Below, piece by piece: positions 4,467 through 52,129 of a DNA stretch of 64,000 bases. The translations under genes were made by a program, and so were the position numbers. Below the pieces are notes generated by a model. The model saw nothing but the letters and a program-made list of their open reading frames with translations, searched no databases and had not been told where the DNA came from. Source of the DNA: Octopus sinensis (taxonomy: Eukaryota); assembly GCF_006345805.1 (NCBI RefSeq), contig NC_043016.1:28210001-28274000 (forward strand). Reading direction: 5' to 3'. Position 1 is the stretch's first letter, and the number at the start of each line of letters is the position of its first letter.

Positions 4467-5044
4467 ATACTTTGCAAAAGACTTCATTTGCAACTCCTAT
4501 GCAAATAAATGGTAACGTGTTTGGCTGAAGCAAATATATTTTTTCATAATTTCTTTATAAATGTTTATTTTTGAAATGATTTTTCTCCTGGCACATTTTT
4601 TGAAGTAGAATTAACTAGCTATGAAGAACATGACATAATTTTAGATGGTAGTTATTTTCATTTGAGTCTAGATTTACTGTTTGTTTTTACTGATAAAGAT
4701 AATTAATATTCCAAATATTATGGAATTTTTAATCACCTCACAGGTGACTTTTCTATGAATCAAACAGTTTAGGCAATACTATATAATCTTCACATCATTT
4801 TTCCTCTAAAGTCTAATTGATATATTTCAATATAATAATCATTGCTCTTAGGAATAGTTGTAATTATATATATTTCTTTAATCCTGTTTATGTAACTATA
4901 ATTAAATCTACAATAGTTTAATGGCTTCACAGCAATTAAGTAAACAACTGATATCCGTCCCCTCACCCCCATCGCCTATTTCCAGTTTTAATAAATTGGG
5001 ACTGGTGTGTCAACTCATTTCAAAAAAATTATTTTTTTTTATTT

Positions 5045-17599: not shown

Positions 17600-20160
17600 A
17601 TGTCCTGCGCCGTGAGGATGAAAGACTTGAGGTATTTCGTGTTGCAAGACAGTGTGTGAGAGAGAATCGTGATGTGGTAGGAGAGAAATGTGTTCGCATG
17701 GAGGATGGTTCACTTGCGCTAAATGAGGATGCAAAGAGAGAAGCTTGGAGACGCCACTATGAAAGGTTACTGAATGAGGAAAATGAATGGGATAAAGAGA
17801 GTCTGCCGAATGTTGACCCTACAGAGGGACCAGCTATCCGAGTTGATAGTTCCGTGGTAGCTAAGGCAATTAGAAGCATGAAGACAGGGAAGCCCCAGGC
17901 CCATCAGGAATTACTGCAGAGATGCTCAAAATATCTGGCAGTGTCGGCTATAACCTAGTCACCCGTATAGTCAACCAGGTGATACACGAAGGAGTCATAC
18001 CCAATGACTGGTGCAGCAGCATACTAGTCAACTGCTACAAAGGTAAAGGTGATGCCCTAGATACAAATAATTACAGAGGTATCAAGCTGTTGGATCAAGT
18101 AATGAAGGTTACGGAGAGGGTCATAGCCCAACTAATTAGAGAGAGAGTTAGTTTAGATGAGATGCAGTTTGGGTTCGTGCCAGGGAAAAGTACCACTGAT
18201 GCTATATTCCTGGTAAGGCAGCTGCAGGAGAAATACCTAGCCAAAGATAAGCCCCTGTACCTTGCTTTCGTTGACATGGAGAAAGCTTTTGATAGGGTCC
18301 CCCGATCCCTTATCTGGTGGTCAATGAGGAAACTAGGGATAGATGAATGGCTGGTGAGGACTGTGCAAGCCATGTACAGAGATGCCGTAAGTAAGGTTAG
18401 GGTTGGCAACATGTACACAGAAGAATTCAAAGTAGAGGTTGGGGTCCACCAGGGTTCAGTACTCAGCCCCCTCCTATTTATCATAGTACTCCAGGCAATT
18501 ACGGAGGAATTCAAGACAGGCTGTCCCTGGGAGCTCCTCTACGCTGACGACCTTGCTCTTATTGCTGAGTCACTATCAGAACTGGAGGAGAAGTTCCAGG
18601 TGTGGAAGGAGGGTTTAGAATCAAGGGGCCTTAGAGTCAACCTAGCTAAAACCAAAGTACTAATAAGTAGAAAGGTAGACAATCCACAAATATCTTCAGG
18701 AAGATGGCCCTGCTCGATCTGTAGAAAAGGTGTAGGTAGAAACTCTATAAGATGTACCCAGTGTAAGCTATGGACACATAAGAGGTGCAGCAATGTCAAA
18801 GGTAGGCTAACTGGGAAGATAGTTTTTGTATGTGGCAGATGCTCGGGAGCATTAACCTCCGAAAATCTGCAGAAAACAACTTCCGTCACTTTCCAGGGGG
18901 AAAAACTAGAAGTAGTTGATAGCTTCCGTTATCTAGGTGACCAAGTCAGTAGTGGGGGTGGGTGCGCTGAAAGTGTAACTGCTAGAATAAGAATAGCCTG
19001 GGCAAAGTTTAGGGAGCTCTTACCTCTGCTGGTGACTAAAGGCCTCTTGCTCAGAGTAAAAGGCAGACTGTATGATGCGTGTGTACGAACAGCCATGCTA
19101 CATGGCAGCGAAACATGGGCCGTGACTGCTGAGGACATGCGTAAGCTCGTGAGGAATGAAGCCAGTATGCTCCGATGGATGTGTAATGTCAGTGTACATA
19201 CTCGACAGAGCGTTAGCACCTTGAGAGAAATGTTGTACCTAAGTAGCATCAGTTGTGGTGTGCAAGAGAGACGATTGCGCTGGTATGGTCATGTGGCGAG
19301 AATGGATGAAGATAGGTGTGTGAGAAAGTGCCAATCCCTAGCAGTTGAGGGAACCCGTGGGAGAGGTAGACCCAGGAAAACCTGGGACGAGGTGGTGAAG
19401 CACGACCTTCGAACTTTAGGCCTCACTGAGGAAATGACCAGAGACCGAGACCTTTGGAAATATTCTGTACGTGAGAAGACCAGGCAGGACAAGTGAACCC
19501 AGCCCACTTATGAATGCCTTTCCTCCCTTGGACACAAAGACCGGCTGAAGCAAGCGAAGTCGATATAGAACCTCATCCGACGACAGACACCCATGCCAAC
19601 CCCCCATGCTTGCGAAGACATGTTGGGGCAAGCGAAATCGAAATCGAAACCGAATTGAACCAGCCAGAATCCCTGGCCTGGTGGTACGTAAAAAGCACTA
19701 TCCGACTCGTGGCCGTGGCACGTAAAATACTCCAATGCGACCGTACGACAGGCACCCATGCCAACCTCCTTTGCTTGTGAAGACATGTTGGGGCAAGCGA
19801 AATCGAAATCGAATTGAACCAGCCAGGATCCCTGGTCTGGTGGTACGTAAAAAGCGCTATCCAACTCGTGGCCGATGCCAGCACCGCCTCGACTGGCTTC
19901 CGTGCCGGTGGCACATAAAATACACCAATCTGACCGTGGCCGTTGCCAGCCCCGCCTGGCACCTGTGCAGGTGGCACGTAAAAAGCACCCACTACACTCA
20001 CGGAGTGGTTGGCGTTAGGAAGGGCATCCAGCTGTAGAAACATTGCCAAATTAGACTGGAGCCTGGTGCAGCCTTCTGGCTTCCCAGAACCCCGGTCGAA
20101 CCGTCCAACCCATGCTAGCATGGAGAACGGACGTTAAACGACGATGATGATGATGATGAT
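17600..20160 (+). mobile_element. 5'-truncated RTE-clade LINE with (GAT)n tail
   Basis: RT ORF 17656-19496 with one frameshift near 17890 (KTGK/APGPSGITAEMLK); motifs FVDMEKAFDRVP, GVHQGSVLSP, LYADD, RLRWYGHVARM, RGRGRPRKTW; 3' UTR ends gacgttaaacgacgatgatgatgat. Confidence 0.95.
17922..19496 (+). CDS. RTE reverse transcriptase (524 aa open portion) with embedded PHD-type zinc finger
   Basis: YADD motif; CSICRKGVGRNSIRCTQCKLWTHKRC...CGRC fits C4HC3 spacing. Confidence 0.9.
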   Translation: MLKISGSVGYNLVTRIVNQVIHEGVIPNDWCSSILVNCYKGKGDALDTNNYRGIKLLDQVMKVTERVIAQLIRERVSLDEMQFGFVPGKSTTDAIFLVRQLQEKYLAKDKPLYLAFVDMEKAFDRVPRSLIWWSMRKLGIDEWLVRTVQAMYRDAVSKVRVGNMYTEEFKVEVGVHQGSVLSPLLFIIVLQAITEEFKTGCPWELLYADDLALIAESLSELEEKFQVWKEGLESRGLRVNLAKTKVLISRKVDNPQISSGRWPCSICRKGVGRNSIRCTQCKLWTHKRCSNVKGRLTGKIVFVCGRCSGALTSENLQKTTSVTFQGEKLEVVDSFRYLGDQVSSGGGCAESVTARIRIAWAKFRELLPLLVTKGLLLRVKGRLYDACVRTAMLHGSETWAVTAEDMRKLVRNEASMLRWMCNVSVHTRQSVSTLREMLYLSSISCGVQERRLRWYGHVARMDEDRCVRKCQSLAVEGTRGRGRPRKTWDEVVKHDLRTLGLTEEMTRDRDLWKYSVREKTRQDK

Positions 20161-30325: not shown

Positions 30326-30899
30326 CAGTTGTTTAATAAAGGTACAGAGCACCACGACGCATAATCACGGAGGTGTGAGTTCGAGTCTCATAGCCGGCCA
30401 CCAACACTTTTTAATTTAAGGCGTAGGAGTGGCTGTGTGGTAAGTAGCTTGCTTACGAACCACATAGTTTCGGGTTCAGTCCAACTGCATGCCACCTTTT
30501 ACTATAGAGTCGGGCCAACCAAAGCCTTGTGAGTGGATTTGGTAAACGGAAACTGAAAGAAGCCCATCGTATATATGTATATGTGTGAATATGTTTGTGT
30601 GTCTGCGTTTGTCCCCGCAAACATCGCTTGACAACCGATGCTGGTGTGTTTACGTCCCTGTAACTTAGCGGTTCAGCAAAAGAGACTGATAGAATAAGCA
30701 CTAGGCTTACAAAGAATAAGTCCTGGGGTCAATTTGGTCGACTAAAGGCGGTGTTTCAGTCAAATGACTGAAACAAGTAAAAGAGTAAAAGAGATACATT
30801 AATGTGAAAAGCACAAATTTTATTAACAGAGATGATGGAATTAAAGGGAGGTAAAAAATTTTCTAATGTTTAATAGCAGGTAAAAACAAACTTTAAAAA

Positions 30900-33800
30900 A
30901 AAAAAAGAATTTTTTTTTGAAATGAGTTGACATGCCAGTCCCAATTTATTAAAACTGGAAATAGGCGATGGGGTGAGGGGACGGATATCAGTTGTTTACT
31001 TAATTGCTGTGAAGCCATTAAACTATTGTAGATCTAATTATAGTTACATAAACAGGATTTTAAAAAAAATATGTAATTACAGCTATTCCTGACAATGATT
31101 ATTATATTGAAATATATCAATTAGACTTTAGAGGAAAAATGATGTGAAGATTATATAGTATTGCCTAAACTGTTTGATTCATAGAAAAGTCACCTGTGAG
31201 GTGATTAAAAATTCCATAATATTTGGAATATTAATTATCTTTAATCAGTAAAAACAAACAGTAAATCTAGACTCAAATGAAAATAACTACCATCTAAAAT
31301 TATGTCATGTTCTTCATAGCTAGTTAATTCTACTTCAAAAAATGTGCCAGGAGAAAAATCATTTCAAAAATAAACATTTATAAAAGAAATTATGAAAAAA
31401 TATATTTGCTTCAGACAAACACGTTACCATTTATTTGCATAGGAGTTGCAAAATGAAGTCTTTTGCAAAGTATTTATGTTGCCTTTTTCTTTATTGGGTA
31501 TCTTCGTCGTGCATTTATCATAATGAGACCAACAATTGCAAGTACAAATGGAAGGAACCAAGTGAAGAACAACCACATATTCTCCAGTTTAGGATATCCT
31601 AGCATGAAGTGGCTTTGGGTTATCACAGCAAAAATTATGATTGTTGTCTGAAGAGAGACAGAAAACAAAAACGCAGATAAACTTTGGCAAACAACATTGA
31701 AATGGAGAACAGAATCAAAAAACAATACAGCTTATTGCAACAGTTGACAATTGAGTGAGAAAAATACATTTAAACTGTATAAACAGGAACTAATTAAAGA
31801 GTATTGTAGACATATATTAAGAGGTTGAATGGCAAATTTGGCCAACTAAATAACAGTTCCTCCAATGTTCATTGATGTATTCCATAACAGTTTTGTTTCT
31901 TTTATGAAAGCCAAAAGTGCCATGAACTGAAAAGGCCTAGAACTTTACTGTCAATGACAAACTATATCACTTGGTGTGCATGTGCTCCAATCTGAGGAAA
32001 AGTAACCAGACATAAAAATCTGGCTGAAAAATATCTCACAATATGAAATACAGAATTGGAAAGCATAAAAGCCTGCATGACCTACAGCACCATGTAAATC
32101 TAAGAATAATTAGATAAATCTGTTTGATTAATTAAAATGCAAGGAAAAAGAAAAATGCACACTGATTTGTGGAATATTCTGTATAACACTGTATGTTGTG
32201 CATTTTCAATTTATTCTATACACTAATAGAGAATGTTGATATTAGTCACTTGATATAACCGTAAAATACTCTGGAAAGCTTACAATATATAACCACATGG
32301 TCAAAATGATTACAGCTGCTTTTCATTAGATCAACAAGTTATTACTGGCCTTGCAGTAAACAAGAAGGACTTAATAGTTTCATTAAGCTATATACTCATC
32401 AATACAATTCAGCTATAAGCAGGACTAAAAGTTCAACTACCCTTATTTCTATAGTGTAACTATCATGAAGAACCAAGCTTGCAATTCAGAAACTATATTA
32501 AATTGGCTGACAAACTTTTTGATCATTTGTTCAATCAAGCAAAGCTGTTTTAGCATGTCCACTAGCATAAACTGGTAGACTAATTAACAAATAGCATGTA
32601 CCTGTCTACCAAACATCAATTTAATTATAGCAAGGCTAAATAAAAGAGAACAGCCTCTTTTAGAAATATTCACACCATGAAATACAATAATTGGTAGTAA
32701 TAAATCAGAAATTTAGATACATTTGACTTGTAAAACATACACATTTAATAGAAAGGAAAAAAAATCAAAAACAATACTTACGTAAACACGAGAGAGTAAA
32801 ACTGATTTTATATCTCTTTCTAGGTAAAAACTCGTAGAGTACCAAGATAACCAAATACCACCAAGTGTCGATCCACCCACAAGTTGAGTTATATATACAT
32901 GGATTAGATCAGGTTTTGGAGACTGAAGAAATGGAAAGAAAATAACAACAGTAGTGGGAATTACTTGTTTAATATACTGAAGGGATCAAAACGAGGCCAA
33001 TACAAAGAAAATATAATAGTGGAGACTGTTATATCCAAACACACAGATGCTAGGTTAGCCTAACCACCAAAGGCAAGTACCTTATTTTAGTATGTTATTT
33101 TCTGACCTAAAAGTGCTTCTGAAGAGTAAGCCCTTTTGTTTAGGCCTTCTTAGCCACTAACACCCACCTTTCTAAACAAGTTATTGTAACAACACCTCCC
33201 ACTCCCTTCTCTGCTGAAAACTGGAAGACAAAGAGTCCCTATCTTCAGTTCTTTCAGTTACCCCTCATCATGCTATATCTTACAAAGACAGAAGGAAAAG
33301 GTAAAATGCCTGTCCTTTCCTGTCAACATGATTGATGGACTCCCCAAAACAGCAATTAATTTTGATAGTGCAAAACAAGCTTTGTTGCCCTGCATCTTGG
33401 CATATGACATGTGAAACTGACCAGGCAGCTGCAGATTATCTACAGTCCCTGGCACATTCCTGTTGATTCAATGAGCTTTTCCTCTCCAGCAAGAACTTAT
33501 TACATACATTATAACTAACAATTATCACTGAGATACAATTAGTACATAATTACCATAAAGTACAATAATTTATTACATACATCACCACTAGTGTAGCTAG
33601 TGGGGTGGGCAGTAGGGGTGGTCTGCTCCAAGCAGCACTTTTAAAGGGGCATTACTTTCGGGTCTGCTGTATGCAATACGTCTTTTGTGAGGTCCAGGGG
33701 TCGGCAAACGGAAGGGCCGTTCCAGATGGCACACACTCTAGCTATGCTAATGTACACCACTACTTAAAACTTGGATAACAATTATACTTTATGGGAAAAT

Positions 33801-35911
33801 TAGAGGAAAGAAGAAAAAAAGTTTTAGAAAATATTTTCTCTCAATTGTGTAGAAAGTTGTCAAGCAGAGAACTTGTTTGCATGACATAAAACATTTAATA
33901 TTGTTTATAGCAGTTAGTTCATTAAATATAACATACATACTTAAATACACAAAACACATACAATCAATATAAAGTAATCATCACTAAAATGTTAAATTGC
34001 TTGTTGATAATTAAGAGACTTTAATTATTAAGGGGTTATAAAAAAAAAGCAGTTTAATTAGGTTTTTGTGACCTAAAATTATGAACAACCTCAAATAGGT
34101 TTTTCTTATTGTATAATATTAATTCATCCTAATTTTGGCACAAGCTGCTAAAGTCTAGGGGATGGTGCTTAACTAGTACATATCTTAATAACTCCAAAAG
34201 GATGAATGGCAAAGTCAACCCCAGTAAAGCAAGAAGAAATGGGCACTAAGCATTTTCTCAGACTTGATAACAATTTGACCAGCAATGTGCTTCTTCTATC
34301 CATCCAGTGCTCAAAGAAATTGGTACCAAACAAAAAAAACTGAGATGAAGCCATAAAAATGACACAGATTTATTGCTGGTGAGGGAATTCTTCCACTCCA
34401 TCAATGACATGGTGACATGGGAAGTAATAAAAGACAAATGAAAGAAGCCATATAAAATGAGGGGAGACAGAAGGATCTCTACTAACAGGCAAGGGAAAAC
34501 TGGAACCCAAGGGCATTGTGATTGGCATGCCTAACAAAAAGAGGTTGAGCATGCCTGTTCTATACAATAGCTCAAATTAAATAACTGCGAGAAATAACAG
34601 CCAAATCACCCTTCAACTCCACTTTACTATCTTAAAATATGGAAGGGCAAAGGAGATAGGACTGACATCAAAATGGGATGGTCAAAACTGGAACATCCCT
34701 CAGGATAGTTCAACTCCTTAGCAATAATCTAGGGCTAAAAAGCATTATTTTGTTTGGCTCAAGTCAGCTTTATTCAAAGACATTCTTGCCACCACCATCT
34801 AGTCTTTATCTCATACACACATTCCCACTCCTTGCTGTTATTTCTAGCTGATTAGAAACCAAAGAGAAGCTCCCTTTTGTCTGTTCAAATTCTCAGTAGT
34901 TACCAGATTTAAATCATTAAAGGGCAACAAGACCTTACCTTCTGTTCACCCAAACCCTGCTACCTTTGTATGTAGGTAGCACAGTAAGGTATAGTTAACT
35001 GTAGCATATCCATGACTAACACGCTTAACTGGCAACAATCCAGTAAACCACATATCAATCAACTGTGCCATCAATATGCTTTCCCTCTAGTGCTACTATC
35101 CATATGTTTAGGTTGTCACTGTTCCCTTTTGTATACCTTTCTTTTCAATAAGGTGAACCATATTTTGCTAATAATGTTTTACGGTGAGTCTAAATTGTCA
35201 TTATTTTGTACAAGAGGAGGACAAAAGATTAACACAATGACAGATGGTACTGTCTGTTTTAGAAAAGTTTAAAATCAGCAATCAGTGATTCCCTACTTTC
35301 ATCTCTTACAGATTGTGTAACCCAGCTCAGGTCAGAGAAACGGACCATACCTAATTATGCTGACAAATTGGGAGCAAGATAAATATTTATTAACAACAGC
35401 AGTTTTATTATTCATACAGTTAACAGATCCAACATTAGACATGTTGCCAATGTCAGCTGGTGAAAATTAGAAAGATTAAAAGAGAAAACTTACAAACAAG
35501 GTAGTCAAAAAATGTGGAAAGGCCATATATGCCAGCCCTGACAGAAACGTAACAAAAAATTCAGTTCTTATCACCCATGTCAATAACACTTCAGGTTCAT
35601 AGTGACCAAGTTTAGGTTGCTTTCGTATAATTTGGACTAAATTAGCCACTAACCACAGGCAGAAGTTCCCAAGAACAAAGTAGAGAAACTGTCAAGAAAA
35701 GAAAAAAAAAAAAGATCATTAGTTATATATTTAATAAAACAAATCAGAATTAAAACAATTATTATTAGAAATAACTAGAATAGTATAGAAGAGAATAGTC
35801 ATCATCATCGTGTTACATCCACAGTGTTATAACATTTCTAATATTTAATTCTGCAGAGGCAAAAATGAAGGATATCAATGATCCTCACCATATGATATTC
35901 ATCTCTCTCTC
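30900..35911 (-). repeat. Right arm of the ~5 kb inverted duplication
   Basis: Reverse complement of 1-~5040 with scattered substitutions and short indels. Confidence 0.97.
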
Positions 35912-38900
35912 TCTCTCTGTCTGTCTAAGTGAGAGAGAGAGAAAGAGGGAGAGACAGATTCTGCCTGGAGGGTGTGAGGTGAATCTGTGGAAAAGAGGAC
36001 CTAGGAGGACGTAGAGTAAAGTGGTGCAAAATGACCTTCAGATGTTAAGCAATTAGCAAAACTTGAGAAGACCTGTCCACCTAAGTAATCTGGACATCCT
36101 AAAGGCATGTTGTTTATGCCTCTGTCCTTGAAAAATCTCTCCTCCATCTGTGTGTCACTCACTTCATTCACCTCTCCTTTATCTCCCACTCTTGCAATTT
36201 TCACACAATCTATCCTTCAACATGTTCCTCACCCCCCCCCCTTCTCCCTGTATTCACTCACTGCATTTTCCTCCCTTTCATTTCCAGTGCGGGTGAGCTT
36301 ATCTGCCCATTCACCCTATCCAATCCTCTGTACCACTTTACTCATATACACTCCCTTGTAACTTGATGGTATACCCCAACCCATTTTCACCATCTTCTCT
36401 CTCACTCCTCTCCTGGGTTAGCCACCTCCCTCAATACCACTAGCTCTTCAGACAACAGAGTTTAGTTTTGCAAGTTTCTTGGTGACCCCACTGCAGTTGG
36501 TACCACATGAAAAGCATCCAGTACACTCTGTAAAGTGGTAGCCATTAGGAAGGTTATTCAGTTGTGGAAACCACACCAAAGCAGAAAGTAGGGCTTGGTA
36601 TTGTCCTTTGGCTTGTTGGTTTCTGTTAAACTGTCCAACCCATGCCAGCATGGAAAGCAGGCATTATATGATGATGTTTTATTAATTAGACTTGTGTCAT
36701 TACCATCATCATAATTCTGATTCAACGTGCATTTTCTACTGAAGCTTCATACTTATTACTGGAGCAAAGTATTGCTGAACATGGGATCTTGGGTAGAGAA
36801 CAAGTTTCTAAACTACAAATGATTACAATATATGAGACTATAAAAATCTGCAAGACCTTCCTATGATTTAAAGGAAAATGTAAAAAACAAGATGCTTTCC
36901 CTCACAACCTTGCTACCAAGCAAATGGCCGGTCAAAATCTATTCTAATTTAAAAAGGGAAAGAGAAACAATCAAACTTAGATTTGTACATATACATACAT
37001 ACATACAACCTATAAAATGTGACTTTGTAGCAGTATTTACTCTACCCCACCTGGACACACACCATACCTGCAGACACTCTCACACATACATGTACCTTGT
37101 ACAAAGAACAGAAAATCAAACATGTCAATGACAACAACAAATGATTTAAGGCTGCAACTGAGTTTCAAGTCATCACTTGCTGAAGTTCCTTCTCTTCTAG
37201 GAACTACAAATAGTGAAAACAAGGCAACGAGCAGAGAGGGGGGTTGATTATATCAAGGAATAAGGAATCAAACTCATTCTAAAGATGATATACACTACAG
37301 GAAATTAAGAAAATTAGAAAACCCTAGGGTGAAGGAAGGGGCTAAGATTGAAGCCTAGTGCAGCCATCTGGTTTGCCAGCCCTCAGTCAAAATTGTCCAA
37401 TCCATGCTAGCATTGAAAGCGGATATTAAACGATGATGATGATGAATATTATTCAACATACACTAGATTTTGATAATGGAATCAGTCAAGGTGTTAATTA
37501 TCAACTATCAGTTTCTGCTTTGACTCCAGAAGACGTTAGTATCATCGTTCATGAGAAAACTACAGAAATATAACCCAGATAGTTTACGTACAGTTGGAGA
37601 AGGAAGATAAAGTTAAAAGAGTCTACAGTACATAACTTCAAAAAATAAAGATCCTATGATGAATAGAAGCAGAAAAAAACTGGGTATTGTATCATGACAA
37701 TGTACTGTGAATAGAACAAACAGCAGCCATAATTAGTGAACACAAAATGGAGCAAAACAAGACATAGAAGTAAAGGGCTTTTTGATAGCAGAGTGGGTAG
37801 CAGCCCTAGTTAAGTTGAAATCAGAAGATATACTTGTAATGCACAGTGACAGGTTGTGTTTACCAACTCTGGCTATTTACGCCTTAGTTAATCAGACATT
37901 ATGGTTATAAACTATTAGAAGAACAAAATAGATACTTCAGAAGGACTGACTACTAAGACATTCAAGTGATCGACCAAGATGCAAAAATAAGAGAGAGATA
38001 GTTGGGAGGGGGTATAGAAAAATATAATAGAGGACAAAACCAGATTATAAGACATGTAATTTGTATCAAGATGCCCTCTTCTTCAATCAACTACAAGAAA
38101 AGTTCTGAGACAAGAACAAATCATTAAAGCCAATATTTATTGATTTGGAGAAGACATCTTTGACAATGTACCATGAAGAATGGCTGTGAGAACAATGTAT
38201 GCAACATATAGGTGCTAAAAGCAAGGTAAGTGTTTGCAACCAGTTCAAATAGGTAAGCATCTACCAGCACTATCCCTGTTTCTTTCAGTTTAAGACTGAG
38301 TAGTCCCACAGTTCTCAAAGCTAAATTAGTTGCAGAATTAAAGAAAACCTCCCAAATTTGGAAGATGGGATTCAAACAGAGAGACTCAATAGTCAATTTA
38401 GCAAAGACAAATGTTTTAGTTAGCAGAAAATACAACAGAATGCTAGTACCAACTTGGAAATGGTTGTGTTTGATATACAGAAAGTCAGCAGGGAGGTACA
38501 ACTGTTGTACACTGTGTACCAAATGTAAATAATGGGTGGATAAAAGGTGTAGTGGTATCGCAGACAGGCTGACAGAGAAGTATTTCAGATGATACACAGA
38601 GGTAGTTAACAATAAAGTCCCTCAACTGCCCAGAAGACTCATTCATCATCATCATCATCATTTAACATCCGTTTTCCATACTGACTTGGGTTGGATGGTT
38701 TGATAGGAGCTGGCAAGCCAGAGGGCTACAAAAGGCTCTAGTCACCTGTCCTGGTGTGATTTATATAGCTGGATCCTCTTCATAATGCCAGCTATTTTAC
38801 AGAGTGTACAGTGGGTGATAAGCAACTTGTTATCTAGATGACCTAATCATTACTATCAAGGGGATTGAGGTAACAGAAATGGTAGCTTCACAAATGATCT

Positions 38901-39372
38901 GTTAATAGATGGCTTCTCTCTCACTGAAGAACAGACTTTATGATGCGAGATTTAAAGGTAGTGAGGTTTGAGCATAAGAATGCGGAGGACATTGGGTGGA
39001 AACTGGGAACAAACAACGTAAACACGTTCTATAACTATGAATGTGGAATTAAAACATTGCTGCTGGCACTCTGGTACAACCAAATCTACTTCTCAATATA
39101 TGACCTCATATTATCCATTTCTAGTCTGTAACGTGCACTCTGGCTTTTGTCAATTCATTTTGTCCGTTACATTTTACCTTTTCACTAGTTTCAATCATCA
39201 GGCGGCCATGCTAAGGCACTGTTCTGAAGGGTTTTAGTCAAACCAATAGACCACAGGACTTTCCTTTAAAAGCATGGTGTTTATTCTCTTAGTCTCTTTT
39301 GGCCAAACTGCTAAGTTAAGGGAGACATAAACTAACACCAGTTATCAGCAGTGCTGGGGGATAAAGACAGAG

Positions 39373-39412
<40 letters not shown>

Positions 39413-42400
39413 CAACTCAAGTATTAACAGAAGTATTAATACATGCTAAATATTAACAGAAGCTCAGGGAAGGAAAGAAAGGTGGTTTTACATTTTGAGG
39501 AAAGTCCAAGAGTAAAGGAAGACAGGAAAAAAAAAAAAATCGCCAACAATTCACATGTAGTTCCAGTTTATATATATATATACATACATACATTCACAAC
39601 AGGTTTCTTTCAGTTTCCATCTGTCAAATCCATTCACTAAGCTTTCGTTAGAAGACACTTGCCCAAGGACCAAGGTGCTATGCAGTGAAACTGAACCCAT
39701 AAGCATATGGTTCAGAACTTCTTACCCCACAACTGTACCTATGCCTCATATGAAATATGTTTAATATATCTTTTTCTGCTGGAATACAAAAGACATTGCA
39801 AATGAGAGTTACCAAAAGCCACAGCCTACCATATTAAACAGTAAAAATACTTACAAATGTAGTGAACTTGTCCATGATAAACATAGCATGATATGCAAGC
39901 GTGAGGATTTGGATTTTTAGCCCCTGCAAAAATGAAAATATAAAGAATGAGGGAGAGAGAAAGAGTGTGAAAATGAGTCAACACATTGTTCAATCAATCA
40001 CAATAGAAATGCCACATTTTATTTAGCTTCGAAGGCACAAACATTTTTTCATTTTTGCTTTTTTTAAATTTTTTTGGAGTAAATATTTTCAATGCTTCCA
40101 GTAACCATGGATTTGTAGCAGAGTAATCTCTAAACTGATGCAGCAGATCAAAGACAATAATAGTAAGGTCTGAATTTACAATTGCTGGGTATAATTTAAT
40201 CCAGTTTTCTTATTTGCAAAATAGGAGTTTGTTAGCCCCAGCCATAAAGATGTAAAAACTTAGAAGTCAATTTAACTGATGATCGTGACAAACATATTAA
40301 TTCTTGAAAAAAATGGAAGTCAACTCTAGAATTAGGAAAGATGAAAATAAAAACTAATTAGACTAGCATTGCTTTAACAACATCACTAATTTAAAGTACT
40401 GAATATGTAAAAAATAAATATGGTGACCAAGTCCAGATATGGTTTGTTTAAAAAATAATTTATAAAATGAAGCCACCAAATCTCTAGAGGATTAAAACCA
40501 TTTAGAAAACTAGGTTAACTCACCAAAATACGACTCCACATCATTGTTCCAATAACAGATTCATCCTTGCTCATGCGACATTTGTATAAAACAAAAGATG
40601 CCCCTACATGAATCGCTCCATATATCCGCATTAAAGCTAAATGTGATGCTTCTATCGGCGTCCCTTCACTCACCTAAAATAAAATGTAGCTACAAATTAT
40701 ATAATACTTGTTAATTATAATTTTTCATAATGATTTTGACAACAAATCATTTAACATTTTAAAACTAATATACTGAACAACCAATAAACTATGCAAACTT
40801 TTAGAAAATGCACACACACAAAAAAAAATAGAAAATTTTATTTTATTAAATTTGAATATTTGCAAATATAAATGTAGAATTTACAGGAATCAAGAATCTT
40901 CATAATATGAAAAGTTTTGGTTCGGAGAAAAAGCATTAATCTTCACTGAGTAACTGTCACATTACTAACAGGAACTTCAACTTTCTACCATAGCAAATCT
41001 TAGGATGTGTTTTTTTTACTTCTTGAACATGGTGTAGTTGAGGTGGATTAGTGTATATGGCTGGGTAAACATGGTTACATGGTTGGCATGAACAAGGACA
41101 TACTTAAGCATTAATCACTGTCAAAAATAATTAAATACCAAATATGAATGAGAATACTTAAATATTAACTTGGATAGTAGGAAGCTTCAGATGGTAAAGC
41201 TGCAGCTTACCAACCTTAACAGTTGATAATCTGTTATCCATCACCAGAACAGGGCTCCGTTAGGGGCCTATGCACAAAACAAACATTATTTCGACATGTT
41301 AAGTAATGAAATTTTTTTCAGTAAATGTCACCCTGCAGTTGCTCTGCATTCTAAAAGAAATATTTTTAATAAAAAAAAAAAACTATGACAGTACTAAAGA
41401 AAAAAAAATACAACCATTCTCTGTCTCCCTCGTGATCTTGACTTCAAGATTACAAAACAGGTGAACTTGATGTAGCTGATGCATGCTTGGAACTTCATTT
41501 AACCAATGTTTACATAACAGATCTTTATTACATTCCAATCACACTGATATGTAGGTTTTCTATATTACATTGAACATATATCAATCACTTTAACCCACTT
41601 CTCTACTATTTCTACACCCATCTCAGTTGGTATGACACTGTTTTTGATATCCTCTCATTTTGCTATTCAGCCTCCGACCCACAACTTGCAGTGTACCTAT
41701 CATTATATTCATTCTCTACCTCTCTCTCTCTCTCTTGTACCATCCCAACAACATTTTCCTCTTTATACCCATATTCAGACCCTCTTTTTTCTCTTACCCC
41801 CATGGCAGTCACTCCTATTCAAGCTGAATCACATTTGTCTTGTAATGAACGGTGAAACAGACTCATCAGTCATAGTTGCCTGAGTAAAATGGCTGGTGTT
41901 TGAATGGAGACATTCAAACACCAGCTACTACTTAATCATTGTCAAATACATGACAACTGCTCTAATACTCTTCTTCATTTTGCTAGTCTCTCATGGTTGA
42001 GAAAGACAATTCCACAATTTCTTGCTAAATAACCTGCAGAGATAATATTGTTTACAGTGACCAAATGTTTGTGCTATACATTAGTTTATTCCCTCCTTCA
42101 AATCGACATTGCATGTACAGTTGCATGGTGTGAAGTATTTTGTTCATAAGCACAAAGCATCATCTGGTCTGGGAATTGAATCCATGACCTTACAATCTTC
42201 AGTATAACACCTCTGATCACTAGGCCCCATGCTCTCTCTAATACTGGTGCTACAATAAAATACACCCAGCATACTAAAGCTGGTTTGTGAAAGAAAGGGC
42301 ACCCAGCCAAAGAAAAATGGAACAAGTGACAATTGCTCTTCTGACTTGTCAAAGACAGTAGCTTGAAGTTAAAACTAACTCGGGCTGCGATGACCCATAC

Positions 42401-43051
42401 AACACATGACAGCATAGAAAGCAGGCATAAAACAACCATGAAAAAGAAACTTACTAAATCATTCAGCTTTCATGATACAAATATTGATTACTTAGTTAAG
42501 ATCAACTGCTGAAGGAGAAGAGGTAAAAATCTATTGCATCACCCAAATATACTAATACTTTATCAATGGTAAATAGATGAAAATCTAATGACGGCCTTAT
42601 CATGATTTGAACAATAAAACTTGTAAATAAAGGAAATAATCTAGCTTTCAAAATACATCAACAAGTAACCCATTATTTATGGACTAGGATACTTATAAAT
42701 GTAAAAAGAAAGAGAGACAATTTTAATATTCATAGGGATTGGGCCAAAATGAGTATTTCTGATTTCTCATCCCCCACTTGCTTGAAACCACTACATTGTA
42801 AGTATTGCATTGTCATTTTGTACTTTTGCACCATGTTTAAGAGTAAAAAATTGGCCAGCATAACGGTTGTTGAAATTAAGAGGGTGACAGGCACATTTTT
42901 TTTTCAAAGAAATTTTTTTCTCAACTTTGACTTAATTGTAATCAAAGTTATTAATAAAATATCTGGATAATTTTAGGTGCTTAACAATTAATATTTTTTT
43001 CTCTGCTAGATTCCAAGTAATTTTTTTCCTTACACTAATGCCATAATTTTC

Positions 43052-43082
<31 letters not shown>

Positions 43083-46000
43083 AGGAAGAGGTCTAAAGTG
43101 GGGCAAAATTAATAATGACTTATTTCAATAATTTCCTCTTTAACTACATGGTGCGTAAATATACCAGGAAGAGAGCCATTCTAGCAGATTGTGAAGAAGC
43201 TATAGAGAATATTTTATGTTGAGTTGTTTTAGTCGTGTTTTGTTGTTTCATATTGTGAGTCATTTTTCCAGGATCTTTCATTTGACCTAGATATTTTTAA
43301 TTTTTGGTGCATTTCTGATGTCTGAGGATGAATATTGATGTGTACGAGTCTTTTTTCAAATATATTCCTGGAGAATTGAAGTAGCAAAGTTACCATATTT
43401 TGTGTTACTCATTTTGCCTCATCTAAATTATACTCAAAGAGAATGGAGATAATTTTCTGAAAGTGTTCTGAATATGCTGTAGTGCTTTTAATGCATTTGC
43501 TTAGCTGATATAGGTTTTGTAAGGTAGTGAACATATTACTCTTTTACTTGTTTCGGTCATTTGACTGTGGCCATGCTGGAGCACTGCCTTTATTCAAGCA
43601 AATTGACCCCAGGACTTATTCTTCGTAAGCCTAGTACTTATTCCATCGGTCTCTTTTGTCGATCTGCTAAGTTACGGTTGTCAAGTGATGTGGGGGGGGG
43701 ACAGACACACAAACACACATATATATATACACATATATACAACAGGCTTCTTTCAGTTTCCGTCTACCAAATCCACTCACAAGGCTTTGGTCGGCCCGAG
43801 GCTATAATAGAAGACACTTGCCCAAGGTGCCACGCAGTGGGACTGAACCCGGAACCATGTAGTTTGTAAGCAAGCTACTTACCACACAGCCACTCCTACG
43901 CCTATATGTGAAAAATTATTTTTCTCTAAGTCAACATTACTCATTGTGTCCTATTCACCCTACCTGCTACATTAGTTTTAATACAAAGACTTCTTTTCTT
44001 TCACTATTTCAAGTGCTGATTCAACGAAGCATATTAAATATTCATAACATAAAGCCGGTTTTACAAGTTCTACGCATGTCTGTTCCTATACTTGTTCTAT
44101 TAGGTCATTCATTCATTTTTAAACAATCAATATGACTCGATTAGAAAGGGAGATAAGGGTAGAGACAATGACCTTTTTCAATATATCTGAGATTAGTAAG
44201 AGAGAAAGGGAGTAAGTTAGACTGGGGATTTGATTTGAATGCTTGCAAGAGTGGACTGAGTTAAAGGCACCCATGAACTTTGACATCAGTGTTGCTGTCA
44301 GGATCACCAGAACACTCAGGAGGAGGTAACTGCTGTTAAGCCATTTTTTAAAACTGCTTCTATCGGATGAGAAATTTAGAATCTCTTCAATGTAAATAAA
44401 AATTGCTTTAATTAAAAAATAGCTAAAAGAAAAAAATTACTGTTTATTCATTCAGTTCAAAGGATACTGAGAAATATAGTTAAATAACTGATCCAATAAG
44501 TTTTTGTATAATCTACGCCAAATTTCGCCCATATGACTTAGTAAGAACTATTTGCATGTCACACATTTTAATTAATAATTTACTAAAAAGTCTACTGAAA
44601 CGAAGTTTCTAAATTTCTCATTTAGATTTTAGTCTTTTGAAAAATGGTTAAATTCCTCCTTATTCTTCTTTAGATTCTAATAGTAAGGAGTACCACCAAC
44701 TCAACATTCAAGTTGGGCAGTAAAATATGGAACTCATCAAAATAAGTAAACTCAGAAATAGTAATCATTCAGACAAGTCTAAACTGACACATGCTAAATT
44801 TATCTTAGTCTAGCATCAGATAAGATTTTCTTTCAAGCTTTCTCAATTGAGTAGGAGAAAATTTTCAAAATATCTTGAGGAATATAAATGAAACAAATAG
44901 TGAAAACAAGGAACAAGATAGGTATCTATATCATTTCCCATTCAATATGAGAATAATTCCAATCAAAATGAGAATATCAAAAATAAGAAGGCAATCTAAA
45001 ATATACAGTATTTTTGTGTTAGTTATTTATCACTAATAATAATAAACAAATGTTTGTGTTATATTGTTCAATTCATAGTCAATTTATTCACTAAGTTTAT
45101 TTCCAAAAATCATATTACACACTACAAAAATTAAAGCATTGTAGATAACAACAAAATTGATTCAACATAACACTAAAATATCACATCATTGAGATTCAAT
45201 GCATCATCCACATTTGCTTGAATACTTGCAATAGAATTTGAGCATGTATTTGGTGTTATTTGTTCTATTGCTTCAACAACCACTTGTTCAAGTGCTCTTA
45301 GCCTATACTCTTTAGTTGTCAATTCACTAGGTGTTACTGATAAAATATCATGAAGTTTATTGGCCAATTCACATTTGACATAACTTTTCACTATTGACCA
45401 AATTTGTTCAATTGGATTGAACATGGGGCTGTAAGGTGCCACTCGCAAAACTTCATGCATTGGAAACTGATCTTCATTAAAAACTTGCTCCATCTGAGAA
45501 CGACATGGGGCATTATCAATTACCATAGCTACTGATCTGGCATATCGACTAAATGCCTTAATTAGGCAACACCACGTCTATTCTTTGGCATTCTCTTTTT
45601 CAAATGAGCCCTGTTTAAATTCATAATGAAGACCACCGTTTCCAATACAGCAAATAATATGAACGTTTGCTCCTTTTGAACCAGCTGCAACTGTTGTACA
45701 TCTTGTTCCTTGTGAAGCTTGACCTTCACATCTTGAGATATGAATATTAAAATTGCTTTCATCCATAAACAAAATAGGTTTGTTTATGGCCTGATATTCG
45801 AGCAAACTTAAGACAAAATTTCTACGGTTTTTTTTTTTAATATTCTCAAGACAATTTGGTCTTTCAGGTTCGTTTCTTACATTTTTCAATGTGTACATCG
45901 ATGAATCCAAATGCCTAGCGACTGTTTGCTTTGATATATATTAAGTTCAAATTTCTGCCGTACTGTGCTACAAATTTCACCAAGTGTTATTTTAGGATCA

Positions 46001-49000
46001 TTTTCAATTAGTTCAGTAAAATAATTTTCATGTGCTCTGACTACTTTCAAATAAGTTTTACCACCTCTTCAGCAACTGTTGATTATGGTACGTTCAATTC
46101 TGTGGCCAATCTTCTCCAATCACGGCAAGACTTCCTTTTGTACCCCCCGCCACCCCACCCCCCTTTTTTTAATTAATAATTTTTTTCTACAACCCCCGTT
46201 TTCGGCTATGGAGAATACGAATCTGCAAAAAAACAGGCAAAAATTGGCATTTTGAAACCCTCACCCCTAATTTCTTCATTTTTAACTTTTTTTTTTTTCA
46301 TAATATGTGAGAAAATACGGAGATTATGATTCTAAAAGAATTACCCAAAATTTTTTTCTGAAAAAAAATTTTTTTTTTTCAAATACATGCGGAAAAATAG
46401 AGATTATGATTCAGAAAAAAATTTCCAAAAACTTTTCTAGTTAGGGTTAGGGTTAAACGGTTACGGTTTGGAAAAAAAAAGTGAAAAATGAAGAATTGGG
46501 GTGAGGGTAGTGAGAAGGGGATCTCTGCATCCGAAAACGGGGGTTTTGGGGGGAAAAAATTGCGAGAAAATGGGGGGAGGGGAGGAAGTCTTCCCCAATC
46601 ACCACCATTGCGGTATACAGTTAAAATGTATTATTTTTTTCCTCTCTCCACAAATATATTTGCTCTTTTGATTTTCTAGGCACAGTGCAGATCGATTAAG
46701 AAAGAATAATTCAAATCGGACTATTACAACTTTTTTTTACATGACTACTGAGAGTATCCAATAAATGGTCTTTAAGGAAACACCACACTCTTTCACACAA
46801 AAAAATACCTCAAGATAAGGGTGGGAAAAAAATGAGATACGATTCCAGAGGCAGTTCTCTCCCCTCAAAGACAATATTCACGCGCCCCCTCCCCTTTACA
46901 ATTTCTCTCTCTCTCTCTAAGCATCGGCGGCTGTAGTTCCAAGTCAGATAACCACGCATTAATATTCTCATTTTGGCGGAATACGCACACCACTCGTTTT
47001 CGGCGTAATCCTAACTCCTAAATACCGGGTGTGCGTATTCTTTACTTTCGCCCACATTTTGAATGAAATTATTCCATATTAAATCTGAATTTCTTAGTCC
47101 TTAATTATTCTCGTTTTGAATGGAATTATTCTCCTATTGAATGTGAAATGAAATGGACAGTAGTTTCAGAAATAAAGAGGTTTAATATTGGAGTTCCGGC
47201 TTCAAACAACGATCTTTAAAAAATACTTTGCACTAAATTATTCCCAAAGCAAAATAATCCTTTCTACTATAGGCACAAGACCTGGAATTTGAGAAGAGGT
47301 GGATAGTCGATCACATCGACCCCAGTACTTGACTAGTACTTAATTTATCGATCCCGAAAGGATGAATGGCAAACTCGACCTCGGCGAGTAATAATGTTAA
47401 TAGATTCGGCTTTCGGGAAACGTAAAATGCTTGAAGAGGCGATGGTGGAGATAGTGAAGATTTCTAAAACATTTTAGTATAAAACTTTAGATTTTAGCTG
47501 AGGTGTCTTTGTGCCTATTTGTTACCCAACCATCACTTGACAACCGATGCTGGTGTGTATACGTCCTCGTAACTTAGAGATCAATAGAATAAGTCCTGGG
47601 GTCGATTTAAAAACCCTTAAAAGCGGTTCTCCAAATGGCTACAATCACATGGCAAACAAGTAAAAGAAAATATTGTTTGTATGTCCTTTTCAGACTGTCA
47701 CCCTACCATGATGAAGTATTCCGTACCTTTATTATCCCGAGATTTACATCGCATCCCTCGCAGATCCAATCAAGCCGGACAAGTTTAAGGGTAAAAAGCA
47801 GTCGAAAGATATGTCTCGGCTTGTACAGGGTTCGGATCTGAGGTGGGATTAAATACCCTTTTCTCGTAAAAAAACATACACCCGCTACATAAACATCAAC
47901 AAAGAAACGAAAGCAAATCTCAAGTTATAACCACAAGTGTGCCTTCTTCCCTTCTCGACTTTGTTTCTTCATAACTTGTGATATACCGATCTCAGTTCTT
48001 CGGATTAGAAAATAAATATCATCAATGGCCTAAGGCTCCAGGAGGGGCAATAGTTTCTATAATGGGAATAGTTTTAAATTAAAGTACATCGTCGTTTTGG
48101 AGATGAAAATTTATTTCACTGTTAGGACGATATTGCTATTGCAACATCTTCCTAGCAAATTCATTAACATCTCTATGGAAACTTCTTACAAAAATTGCGG
48201 GACTTTCAGTAAATAACGTTGAAAAATAAATTCTAAATTTTCATATTTTCAAATGAAACTGTGTTTAAAAAAATTTTTTAAATCAGGCAATATATAATTG
48301 GGAGATTCTCGTAAGTGAAATGTTTAAGAATTCGAAATGTATTTCTTTATCAAGCACAAATCTTATAATATGACTTAAACTAGGATGTGATGCCAAAATA
48401 ATTTTGGTTAATGTTTACAATATTAACCCAATATTACCCGGGTGTTTTTGTTTTGACTTTCATTTTACTTCCTTATTTTTCCTCCCGTTTAAGGACTCGT
48501 TTATTACTGTAACGTCAGTGTTTACCGTTTTATAAAATTAAATTAGAAAATTGGACAAAACAGAGAACACAATTGAAAAGGAAAAGAAAAAAAGAATCGC
48601 AATAGCGAGCAAATCCTTTAATATCTGAAATCGAGTACAAGTAAGTTTAAAATCCATTTATAAAGTATATTATTCCCAAACAAACCTAAGTAAGAGCAAC
48701 TAAATAGAATACTTCAGAAATGTGTTAATAAAATAATTCTTGATGTCTTTTATAAACTTCTAAAATCACACACACATACACAAACACACACACAAAGTTA
48801 TCCCTGCGCTGCTTTTCGGCTCTTCATTTTAATTTTCACTTATATCTGTGTATAACTAAATGTCCGTGTGATCACGTACTCGAAATCCTAATTAAAAAGT
48901 AAATAGATTTTCGAAATAGCTATTATACTACATTAGGATATTGGAGCGCACAAAATTTGAACTGAAATTGTACCTGTAAAGAATGTATTTATTCCAGGAA

Positions 49001-49681
49001 GCCCGTTATTTACAGATAGTTACGATATAAACACATCCCGGACTTTTTGAGCCTTAATGGAGATGATCAAAAAGGTATTAACGATAAATTTGACATGTGA
49101 ATCTCCTTATTTACATTAAATAAGAACAAATACACACCAACTTCATTAACCGGGTGTCGTTGCGGGTGGAAATTTAGAATTTCTTACGACAGGCATTTTA
49201 AGTGTGAAAGGGTACTTCAAACTTTGCAACAAAGAAAGATTATATCAAAACTAATTTAACATCTTTATTATATCAAGAAGTTTTTTGTTTTTTTTTTTAA
49301 AAATAAGCATTTCCAAATGATGAAGACTCTTAAGAATAACATTATTTCTAGGAAAGGTTCTTCGGAATTCTACAGGTAAAACATGAATAACTCTAAGAAA
49401 GTTTTAGTATCTTATTCCTTAATTAGATCTTTTTAGAAATAAAAAAAAATTATTAATTTCACAGCAATAAATAGTTATTTAAAAAGGCATTATTTTTGGC
49501 AATTACTAACCTGTCTGCGAAGAAACTCGTTCGGGAATAACAGAGCAAATATTCCTAGAAAAAATTCAATCAACATATCAGCCAACAGCCATGTTTTTAC
49601 TGATAGAAATAATGCTGGCGAAAAAATGAATGGCATAGCAATTATTCGGACATAATCGAAAGTAGTTAAATTGAAATCCAT
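31474..49681 (-). CDS. Complete six-exon gene: 299-aa ~8-TM protein with two tandem TP53I11/PIG11-like repeats and C-terminal KKAT. Exons 49681-49511, 40673-40524, 39923-39855, 35688-35494, 32922-32782, 31647-31474
   Basis: All introns GT..AG and phase 0; exon lengths 171+150+69+195+141+174 nt give one open frame from ATG to TAA. WLLADMLIEFFLGIFALLFPNEFL, LMRIYGAIHVGASFVLY and GLKIQILTLAY resemble human TP53I11 ([50 protein letters not shown]) as recalled; remote similarity, not searched. Confidence 0.88.
45173..46630 (-). mobile_element. Disrupted IS630/Tc1/mariner-superfamily transposase (DD35E spacing) in intron 1
   Basis: HTH-like DWRRLATELNVP, catalytic MDESNFN, IDNAPC and PYSPMFNPIE (35 residues between second D and E); frameshifts, stops and a MITE insertion. 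Confidence 0.85.
46124..46594. mobile_element. Palindromic MITE with perfect 8-bp TSD inserted in the transposase
   Basis: TIR ggcaagacttcc / ggaagtcttcc; TSD CCAATCAC at 46116-46123 and 46595-46602; transposase frame (RNGGDWRRL) is continuous once removed. Confidence 0.88.
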
Positions 49682-51100: not shown

Positions 51101-51740
51101 ATAAAACTGCTGCTTATGGCAATAGGGAAACTAGAAAAGTAAATTTGTCAAAAGAAAATATTCAGACATTCATAGTTTAGAAGATAACCTCATAATCATG
51201 TTTTGGGTAGTCATTTCCAAAATGGGGATTTTGAGCATATGTGGTCATTAGCTACCATACACACATATACATAGGTGTAGGAGTGACTGTGTGGTAAGGA
51301 GCTTGCTTACCAACCACATGGTTCTGGGTTCATTACCACTACATGGCACCTTGGGCAAATGTCTTCCACTATAGCCTTGGGCCAACCAAAGCCTTGTGAG
51401 TGGATTTGGTAGACTGAAACTGAAAGAAGCCCGTCGTATCATCGTCATCATCGTTGTTTAACGTCCGCTTTCCATGCTAGCATGGATTGGACGGTTCAAC
51501 TGGGGTCTGGGAAGCCAGAAGGCTGCACCAGGCCCAGTCTGATCTGGCAGTGTTTCTACAGCTGGATGCCCTTCCTAACGCCAACCACTCTGTGAGTGTA
51601 GTGGGTGCTTTTTACATGCCACCGGCACATGTGCCAGACAAAGCTGGCAAACGGCCATGATCGGATGGTGCTTTTTACATGCCACCGGCACGGAGACCAG
51701 ACGAAGCTGGCAATCAGACAAAATGTATATATACATATTA

Positions 51741-51790
<50 letters not shown>

Positions 51791-52129
51791 GTGTGTGTAT
51801 GTGTATGTGTGTGTGTGTATGTATGTTTGTGTGTGTGTTTGTCTCCCCAACACTGCTTGACAACCAATGCTGGTGTATTTTCGTCCCTGTAACTTAGCCG
51901 TTCGGCAAAAGAGACGATAGAATAAGTACTAGGCTTACAAAGAATAAGTCCTGGGGTCGATTTGCTCAACTAAAGACAGTGCTCCAGCATGGCCGCAGTT
52001 AAATGACTGAAACCAGTAAAAGAGTAAAAAAAGAGAGATTATGCATATATATATACATACTGTAGATGAGGTCATGAAAGTTATTGAAAGGTTTACAACT
52101 CAATTGATTAGGAATAAAATTAAACTAGA

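Follow-up and report, generated by a model that had tools for sequence, protein, structure and literature searches.

The locus considered here raises the question of what an apparently unannotated membrane protein of an octopus is, to what it is related and what it may do. The gene concerned, which we call gene B, encodes a protein of 299 aa and lies on the minus strand of a 64-kb stretch of Octopus sinensis DNA (contig NC_043016.1, positions 28,210,001 to 28,274,000 of the forward strand); this whole stretch is referred to as the window, and all coordinates are positions in it. A preliminary description made from the letters alone had taken the product for two fused TP53I11/PIG11-like repeats of four transmembrane helices each with a KKxx retrieval tail, perhaps a transporter or a lipid/sterol-handling protein, expanded in this lineage. 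Several alternatives have to be told apart. The gene could be functional or a dead copy; the double repeat could be an octopus novelty or an old arrangement; the resemblance to TP53I11 could reflect common descent or convergence; and the lysine-rich carboxy terminus could be a sorting signal or just a basic tail. We conclude that gene B, from an Octopus-like cephalopod, is intact and under selective constraint, and that its product is an ordinary member of a catalogued, widespread and uncharacterized family, DUF8292, whose chains, judging by profile comparison, carry two modules remotely homologous to the membrane domain of TP53I11.

Gene structure, constraint and family

Gene B was rebuilt exon by exon. 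It comprises six exons between an ATG at 49681, the first after an in-frame stop, and a TAA ending at 31474; the introns are long, and the window is AT-rich (31-40% GC, except for one stretch of 49% at 18-20 kb). The spliced coding sequence of 900 nt yields 299 aa with the carboxy terminus RRRYPIKKKAT. All introns are in phase 0, with polypyrimidine-AG acceptors and GT(A/G/T)AGT donors, and ten of the ten splice sites are canonical. The exons are as follows (a slash marks an exon border; the repeats and helices are described below).

49681-49511, minus strand: exon 1, 57 aa, with an N-terminal helix, TM0 (residues 7-24), repeat-1 helix 1 (residues 28-48) and a conserved FP motif; donor CAG/GTTAGT; equivalent to exon 1 of Argonauta.
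40673-40524, minus strand: exon 2, 50 aa, with helix 2 and the first part of helix 3 of repeat 1 (SHLALMRIYGA ... MMWSRIL); acceptor TTTTATTTTAG/, donor TTG/GTGAGT, phase 0.
39923-39855, minus strand: exon 3, 23 aa (GLKIQILTLAYHAMFIMDKFTTF), the remainder of repeat-1 helix 3; acceptor TTTTCATTTTTGCAG, donor GTAAGT.
35688-35494, minus strand: exon 4, 65 aa, with repeat-1 helix 4, the linker RKQPKLGHYEPE (cytosolic by prediction) and helix 1 of repeat 2, which has an FP motif as well; acceptor CTTGACAG/, donor TTT/GTAAGT.
32922-32782, minus strand: exon 5, 47 aa, with helix 2 and the first part of helix 3 of repeat 2 (IHVYITQLVGG ... LLSRVY).
31647-31474, minus strand: exon 6, 57 aa and TAA, with repeat-2 helices 3-4 and the tail ARRRYPIKKKAT (cytosolic by prediction), which carries the dilysine motif.

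Exon 3 is the only one not seen as a long open reading frame (ORF). It is the single strong 69-nt open AG..GT candidate in a 4.8-kb interval, it is a separate 23-aa exon in Argonauta as well, and its residues are present in three of the homologous database proteins (P0002-P0004). An earlier candidate for this exon at 37.6-37.7 kb was in the wrong phase and had no donor, and was replaced by 39923-39855.

A search of 5.8 billion database proteins with the gene B product returned a 301-aa protein of Argonauta hians (P0001; 78% identity across 100% of the query), two proteins of 298 aa at 54-55% identity, both derived from assembled public sequencing runs, and a 186-aa fragment from Octopus vulgaris (P0004), which belongs to the paralogue described in the last section rather than to gene B. 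In the Argonauta genome the orthologue has an identical six-exon layout with identical borders, and the six-exon frame first described for 31474-49681 stands with every exon at its original bounds. The comparison with Argonauta gives a nonsynonymous divergence (dN) of 0.13, a synonymous divergence (dS) of 1.69 and dN/dS of 0.078; thus, gene B is under strong purifying selection. The Argonauta orthologue comes after a same-strand gene for a NUDIX hydrolase, and the 3' exons of such a gene are found upstream of gene B.

61968-61792 and 63810-63598, minus strand: exons from the 3' end of a gene for a NUDIX hydrolase (domain match at E 4e-10); identity to the gene next to the Argonauta orthologue is 87% and 58%.

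Thus, synteny is conserved, and P0001 agrees with gene B in sequence, in its six exons and in its upstream neighbour, as expected of an orthologue.

The protein P0002 (298 aa, 55% identity) is encoded by an uninterrupted ORF on three contigs, 1.2-1.8 kb long, which were assembled from three sequencing runs. These contigs are probably transcripts, and if so, the spliced product is expressed in a cephalopod-like relative. In Octopus bimaculoides, the locus LOC106882167 (P0103) is represented by a 109-aa model that differs from gene B in two residues and ends in '...SRILVS'. Such an end is produced when exon 2 is read through its GTGAGT donor (window 40524-40515) to the next stop; hence, LOC106882167 is a truncated model and no supported short isoform. 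The impression that the gene was unannotated is therefore correct only in so far as the database search returned no identical protein: orthologues are annotated, at full length in Argonauta and as fragments in LOC106882167 and in O. vulgaris.

A further possibility is that gene B is a dead recent copy without expression, or that the inverted duplication is an artefact of the assembly. The 3' half of gene B does lie inside a 5-kb inverted repeat with 96.8% identity between the arms, and the octopus annotations of the locus are fragmentary, both of which would suit such an origin. On the other hand, the 900-nt frame is complete, its splice sites are intact, the ratio of 0.078 against Argonauta points to selection, and the place behind the NUDIX gene is kept. 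Moreover, the paralogue's version of exon 4 (exon 4') is present in O. vulgaris at 97% identity, so that both copies are older than that species split. We regard the probability of a dead copy or an artefact as nearly negligible.

The family to which the product belongs was delimited with a profile seeded with it, which was searched against 1.84 billion representative sequences and gave 85 matches at E <=1e-3, of which 39 were at <=1e-10. Nearly all of the 85 are 260-360 aa long and span both halves, most of them aligning from about profile position 5-30 to about 250-290; with 69 family members the gene B product aligns end to end. Every homologue returned (P0001-P0005, P0013, P0014, P0100-P0103) carries the precomputed label PF26941, which resolves as DUF8292, so the membership of the gene B product is judged by proxy, from these labels and from the profile search. 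The family includes the following members.

Brachiopod: Lingula, at least three genes, including LOC106179696 of Lingula anatina.
Molluscs: the chiton Liolophura, Pecten (LOC117333528 of Pecten maximus), Mytilus, Solemya, Saccostrea, Potamilus, Patella, Gigantopelta and Littorina.
Echinoderms: the sea urchin Lytechinus and the starfish Acanthaster.
Tardigrade: Hypsibius.
Chordates: Branchiostoma (Hypp4707) and the gar Lepisosteus (LOC107079889, also named si:dkey-104n9.1).
Octopus: a third paralogue, elsewhere in the genome (LOC115222861 / LOC106877804).

All named members are 'uncharacterized' or 'hypothetical', and P0001 is titled 'uncharacterized protein LOC115222545'. The double repeat is no fusion peculiar to the octopus lineage: proteins of about 300 aa that contain both halves are found in Lingula, the chiton, bivalves, gastropods, sea urchin, starfish, tardigrade, amphioxus and gar. 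Since the double-repeat form is shared by brachiopods, molluscs, echinoderms, tardigrades and chordates, this is an old bilaterian family and no cephalopod invention, and the duplication of the repeat is older than the divergence of the sampled phyla. The supposed expansion in this lineage holds to the extent that two copies stand tail to tail in the window and a third paralogue is found elsewhere in the octopus genome, and it is modest.

Two repeats per chain and their relation to TP53I11

In a single sequence the internal repeat is weak: BLASTP of one half against the other aligns 116 aa at 24% identity and E 0.16, and with five cephalopod sequences hhalign still gives a marginal E of 0.01. 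With 70 family members, the two halves align with a probability of 99.4% and E 3.6e-21 over 117 columns (residues 27-147 against 165-281). The short matches between the halves that had been picked out by eye are real, and the family alignment shows that the two halves are homologous. The family consensus contains the pattern D-x7-G-x6-P, H-x4-R-x2-G, D, R twice. In each unit the first D lies in helix 1 and is followed by the G and by FP at the helix end; H-x4-R-x2-G is in helix 2, the second D in the next loop and the last R in helix 3. The introns follow the same arrangement: intron 2 (SRIL/GL) and intron 5 (SRVY/TT) occupy an identical aligned position and phase in the two repeats, a single codon separates the positions of introns 1 and 4, and repeat 2 lacks an equivalent of intron 3. 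Thus, the gene structure retains a footprint of the duplication.

AlphaFold2, run with a 70-sequence alignment, gave a model with nine long helices (predicted local distance difference test, pLDDT, 93.9; predicted template-modelling score, pTM, 0.91).

Residues 7-24: predicted N-terminal helix, outside the repeats, conserved in the family consensus.
Residues 28-48, 66-89, 95-122 and 129-153: predicted helices of repeat 1.
Residues 164-186, 201-224, 230-258 and 263-289: predicted helices of repeat 2.

The division into four plus four helices thus agrees with the two four-helix repeats of the preliminary description, while the additional N-terminal helix brings the total in the model to nine rather than eight. 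As there are four helices per repeat, the two repeats share the same orientation. Over the family, the segments that would be cytosolic if the carboxy-terminal tail is cytosolic contain on average 10.9 lysine plus arginine (K+R) residues, compared to 5.85 in the lumenal ones; the tail itself contains 3.96 on average. From this bias and the nine helices, we infer a topology in which the N-terminus would be lumenal and the linker RKQPKLGHYEPE and the tail cytosolic. The first helix is unlikely to be a signal peptide: its n-region is net negative, a conserved basic turn follows the helix, and the helix is packed confidently in the model.

Other DUF8292 proteins share all of these features, namely the length of about 300 aa, the N-terminal helix followed by two four-helix repeats, the D/G/FP/H/R/G/D/R pattern in each repeat and, in most, a lysine at -3 from the carboxy terminus. 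Gene B does not differ from them in kind; it stands tail to tail with a paralogue, and the differences between the two lie chiefly in helix 4, the linker and the first part of helix 5.

Against the Pfam family of TP53I11, PF14936, the N-terminal half of the gene B product scores 13.6 bits (E 0.07), below the gathering threshold of 27 bits, and the whole product gives no match. Thus, it is not a member of the TP53I11 family. Local Pfam scans of the whole protein, its halves, four homologues, the 70 members and three consensus sequences returned no significant family (MASE3, DUF5472 and others were noise), and a word-indexed search with the single-repeat profile, aimed at TP53I11, returned only DUF8292 proteins. 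We then compared profiles directly. A TP53I11 sequence, which scores 313.8 bits to PF14936 in a Pfam check, was used purely as bait; it retrieved 526 database proteins, from which 24 vertebrate TP53I11 sequences were aligned, and all comparisons rest on these retrieved sequences. The hhalign results against this alignment are as follows.

Repeat profile: probability 93%, E 3.5e-7, 123 columns (residues 24-151 of the unit against 58-180 of TP53I11), with all four helices covered.
N-terminal half: probability 87.6%, E 3.5e-6, 124 columns.
C-terminal half: probability 56.7%, E 1.1e-4, 60 columns.

The AlphaFold model of TP53I11 shows a disordered N-terminal region of 57 residues, then a helix, a short helix after a proline and three more helices, in the same layout as in a repeat of the gene B product. 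Both proteins have the FP motif behind helix 1, the motif R-x-Y-G-G within helix 2 and a lysine at -3 from the carboxy terminus. TP53I11 (189 aa in vertebrates) differs in having a single unit instead of two; in its hydrophilic region of 57 aa, invariant in the 24 vertebrate sequences and without a counterpart in the gene B product, which begins at its hydrophobic helix; and in lacking both the extra N-terminal helix and the conserved histidine before the arginine.

An alternative is that four-helix membrane bundles resemble each other by composition or convergence and not by common descent. Several results speak for it and against homology: single sequences match PF14936 weakly (E 0.05-0.08), only two of the 70 family members match it at E <=1, none of the three family consensus sequences does so in a Pfam scan, the matches to it over all the local scans lie at E 0.013-0.08, and identity in the hhalign alignment is 15%. 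However, the controls do not reproduce the match: the score of the repeat profile is 45.1 over 123 collinear columns, compared to 11.6 (E 0.37) for the reversed profile and at most 19.3 (best E 0.018) for column shuffles. In addition, FP after helix 1 and R-x-Y-G-G/A in helix 2 are in register, the predicted helix layouts are alike, the lysine at -3 is common to both, and, independently, a bona fide TP53I11 (P0168) carries precomputed matches to PF26941 as well as to PF14936. Convergence thus seems highly improbable, and we conclude that the repeat unit is a remote homologue of the TP53I11 membrane domain, DUF8292 and TP53I11 being sister families. The label 'TP53I11/PIG11-like' is accordingly right with respect to remote homology and wrong if understood as membership in PF14936. 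Since the unit corresponds to the whole membrane part of TP53I11, the gene B product amounts to two TP53I11-like modules joined covalently in tandem.

The carboxy terminus, probable localisation and possible function

The gene B product ends in ...PIKKKAT, with lysines at -3, -4 and -5. KKAT thus fits both KKxx and KxKxx, as the first description of the tail had it, and the family-wide distribution of K+R places this terminus, by prediction, in the cytosol. A lysine set by its distance from the carboxy terminus is the hallmark of the dilysine signals of coat protein complex I (COPI). Such a lysine is found at -3 in 42 of the 69 full-length family representatives (61%, compared to a background of 6.6%; binomial P 4e-32), while at the other positions from -1 to -10 lysine frequencies are 4-19%, with tail lengths varying. 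Argonauta (KKSS) and P0003 (KKKD) keep the motif, and in 27 of the 69 the lysine at -3 is accompanied by K or R at -4 or -5. The eight commonest types of TP53I11 tail end in KK plus one residue (for example, RRPKKV, RKPKKV and LKAKKV). Because the lysine at -3, counted from the carboxy terminus, recurs across the family, COPI-dependent residence in the endoplasmic reticulum (ER) or early Golgi is the best-supported inference: K(-5)K(-4)K(-3)AT would be read by COPI, and the protein would be kept in, or recycled to, these compartments. ER residence of the gene B product itself is plausible.

Classical dilysine cargoes of COPI include yeast Wbp1 / mammalian OST48 and ERGIC-53, and are mostly type I single-pass proteins. 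The gene B product resembles them in a cytosolic (here predicted) carboxy terminus with Lys at -3 plus -4 and -5, about ten residues past the last helix; it differs in being a polytopic protein of nine predicted helices. As a separate observation, all TP53I11 tail types tallied have a lysine at -3, and many vertebrate TP53I11 orthologues (among P0104-P0223) carry a canonical KxKxx, for example RKPKKV or LKAKKV.

The tail could also be read as a purely topogenic one. In this case the positive-inside rule would account for its lysines, and the protein could work beyond the ER, in the Golgi, endosomes or the plasma membrane. A basic tail is indeed expected from this rule without any sorting role, and the tails of the family are generally basic. 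The strictly canonical KKxx or KxKxx is found in 17 of the 69 representatives (25%), which leaves 75% without it, and P0002 ends in QMKKK, which is not canonical. All this tells against retrieval. However, the place of the lysine is set by the carboxy terminus and not by the membrane, with position -3 standing out from its neighbours while tails vary in length, which is how a carboxy-terminal signal shows itself. TP53I11, which the passage of PMC11036061 citing the Human Protein Atlas places in the ER and Golgi, has the lysine at -3 too. We therefore consider a merely topogenic tail unlikely.

Retrieval by COPI forms part of the reading that we favour and, taken as a whole, consider probable on balance: a constrained octopus DUF8292 gene, tandem TP53I11-like modules and a COPI-cycled protein of the ER and early Golgi with a regulatory or scaffolding role. 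In this scheme the product, which has one N-terminal helix and two tandem copies of the four-helix unit in the same orientation, would be returned to the ER and early Golgi by COPI reading of its tail, where it may act in ER membrane homeostasis as a regulator or scaffold, possibly affecting the ER Ca2+ load as reported for TP53I11; and the conserved intramembrane D/H/R residues may serve in helix packing, perhaps as salt bridges, or in the binding of a small polar ligand. Knockdown of TP53I11 lowers basal ER Ca2+ and its overexpression raises it (PMC11719883). This phenotype comes from one study, which shows neither a mechanism nor the localisation, its transfer across remote homology is weak, and a literature search found no paper naming DUF8292; these points count against the functional part of the scheme. 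Our ranking puts a role in the early secretory pathway, regulatory or structural, above enzyme or classical transporter activity, with low confidence.

If, alternatively, the protein were a genuine transporter or channel for small molecules or ions, the parallel repeats could form a pseudo-two-fold pore or site lined by D35/E173, H68/H203, R73 (Q208 in repeat 2) and R105/R240. Charged and polar residues within helices are conserved in both repeats, internal repeats are typical of many carriers, and the effect of TP53I11 dosage on ER Ca2+ (PMC11719883) would also be compatible with transport. Against this, all transporter and channel matches in a Foldseek search of the PDB with the model have a TM-score (template-modelling score) of at most 0.28 and E >0.09, the Pfam and PDB sequence searches were empty, and the repeats run parallel and the helix number of each is even, whereas alternating-access carriers have inverted repeats. 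Besides, the pattern is not strictly kept, as repeat 2 of cephalopods has Gln (Q208) for Arg and Glu for Asp. A transporter or channel is thus decidedly unlikely in our view, and nothing in the Foldseek or sequence searches points to the transporter or lipid/sterol-handling role suggested at the outset or to any particular biochemical activity.

In the same Foldseek search of the PDB, the sole whole-length match to the gene B product model was chain O of 8xqw (E 0.016, TM-score 0.53/0.51, 315 columns), a 318-residue membrane subunit of the Ycf2-FtsHi chloroplast import motor of Chlamydomonas; the other matches were noise. The resemblance extends over the whole length of the fold and is a lead only: identity is 14%, the root-mean-square deviation is 7.1 A, the protein resides in the algal chloroplast inner envelope, and there is no sequence-level match between chain O and the gene B product. 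Identification of chain O with Moc45, a membrane subunit of the same complex with at least seven helices described in a preprint, could not be made. Searches of PDB sequences with the family, repeat and TP53I11 profiles gave nothing meaningful, and Foldseek with the TP53I11 model returned generic helical bundles only.

The inverted duplication and the paralogue gene A

The 3' half of gene B is duplicated in inverted orientation at the left end of the window, where it forms the 3' half of a second gene, gene A.

1-5049, plus strand: left arm of the inverted segmental duplication, with the 3' half of gene A; reaches the left window edge.
30891-35911, minus strand: right arm; it takes in gene B from exon 4 to exon 6 and some 580 bp past the stop codon.
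213-404, plus strand: exon 4' of gene A, 64 aa, about 70% identical in amino acids to exon 4 of gene B and 97% identical to P0004 of O. vulgaris.
2985-3125, plus strand: exon 5' of gene A, whose 47 aa are the same as those of exon 5 in gene B.
4293-4466, plus strand: exon 6' of gene A, 57 aa and stop; its protein sequence, KKAT tail included, is that of exon 6 in gene B.

The two genes thus stand tail to tail, 27 kb apart. The arms are 96.8% identical over 5076 aligned bases and are separated by a spacer of about 25.8 kb; as the left arm leaves the window at position 1, their length of about 5.1 kb is that of the part inside the window. The mismatches between the arms are mostly concentrated in about 300 bp (100-400 versus 35500-35810), a patch made up of the last part of intron 3 and the initial two-thirds of exon 4. 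Minor groups of mismatches occur around 4000-4100 and 4800-5049 of the arm, and the kilobases flanking the main patch are 99-100% identical. All amino-acid differences between exons 4 and 4' fall in the first 42 codons, and there dN is 0.31 and dS 0.19 (dN/dS about 1.6). P0004 has exon 4' rather than exon 4, which makes the two versions older than one would judge from their nearly identical flanks. The simplest reading of these sequences is gene conversion that would have spared the exon 4 patch (helix 4, linker and helix 5); alternatively, the pattern suggests selection that may maintain this patch.

Several mobile elements were observed in the window as well. Between the paralogues, at 17922-19496 (plus strand), there is an intact ORF of 524 aa with an RVT_1 domain (E 3e-32) and a weak PHD-like zinc finger, by its domain content a non-long-terminal-repeat (non-LTR) retrotransposon, which accounts for the local GC peak of 49%. 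Within intron 1 of gene B, two adjoining ORFs at 45173-45910 (minus strand) give weak matches to the DDE_3 transposase domain (E 8e-5 and 8e-4), indicating a decayed Tc1/mariner-type transposase. A dispersed repeat of about 400 bp, resembling a short interspersed nuclear element, occurs in both orientations at 7483-7884, 30425-30793, 43536-43897 and 51279-51999 and also at 39172-39712, with 68-88% identity between copies; its locations include introns 1 and 3 of gene B and the region just past the right arm of the duplication.

A more far-reaching proposal would join these observations. DUF8292 and TP53I11 would belong to a single superfamily, whose four-helix modules would be cycled by COPI in the ER and Golgi, act as dimers, covalent in DUF8292 and homodimeric in TP53I11, and set the ER luminal Ca2+ load directly as a leak, a counter-ion pathway or a pump regulator; the octopus paralogues, homogenised by gene conversion except in the patch of helix 4, linker and helix 5, would be diverging in partner or ligand specificity. 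In its entirety this proposal is speculative and improbable.

For the octopus, the analysis provides a full-length model of a gene that two octopus annotations carry as fragments only, and exposes a second paralogue in an inverted duplication. For the family, it ties the human p53-induced protein TP53I11 to a more ancient and more widely distributed animal family whose chains contain the module twice, and this doubling in one chain suggests that TP53I11 may work as a dimer. To those who study TP53I11 or ER membrane proteins, the confident nine-helix model, the conserved intramembrane D/H/R residues and the conserved lysine at -3 offer material that is a useful lead rather than a field-changing result.

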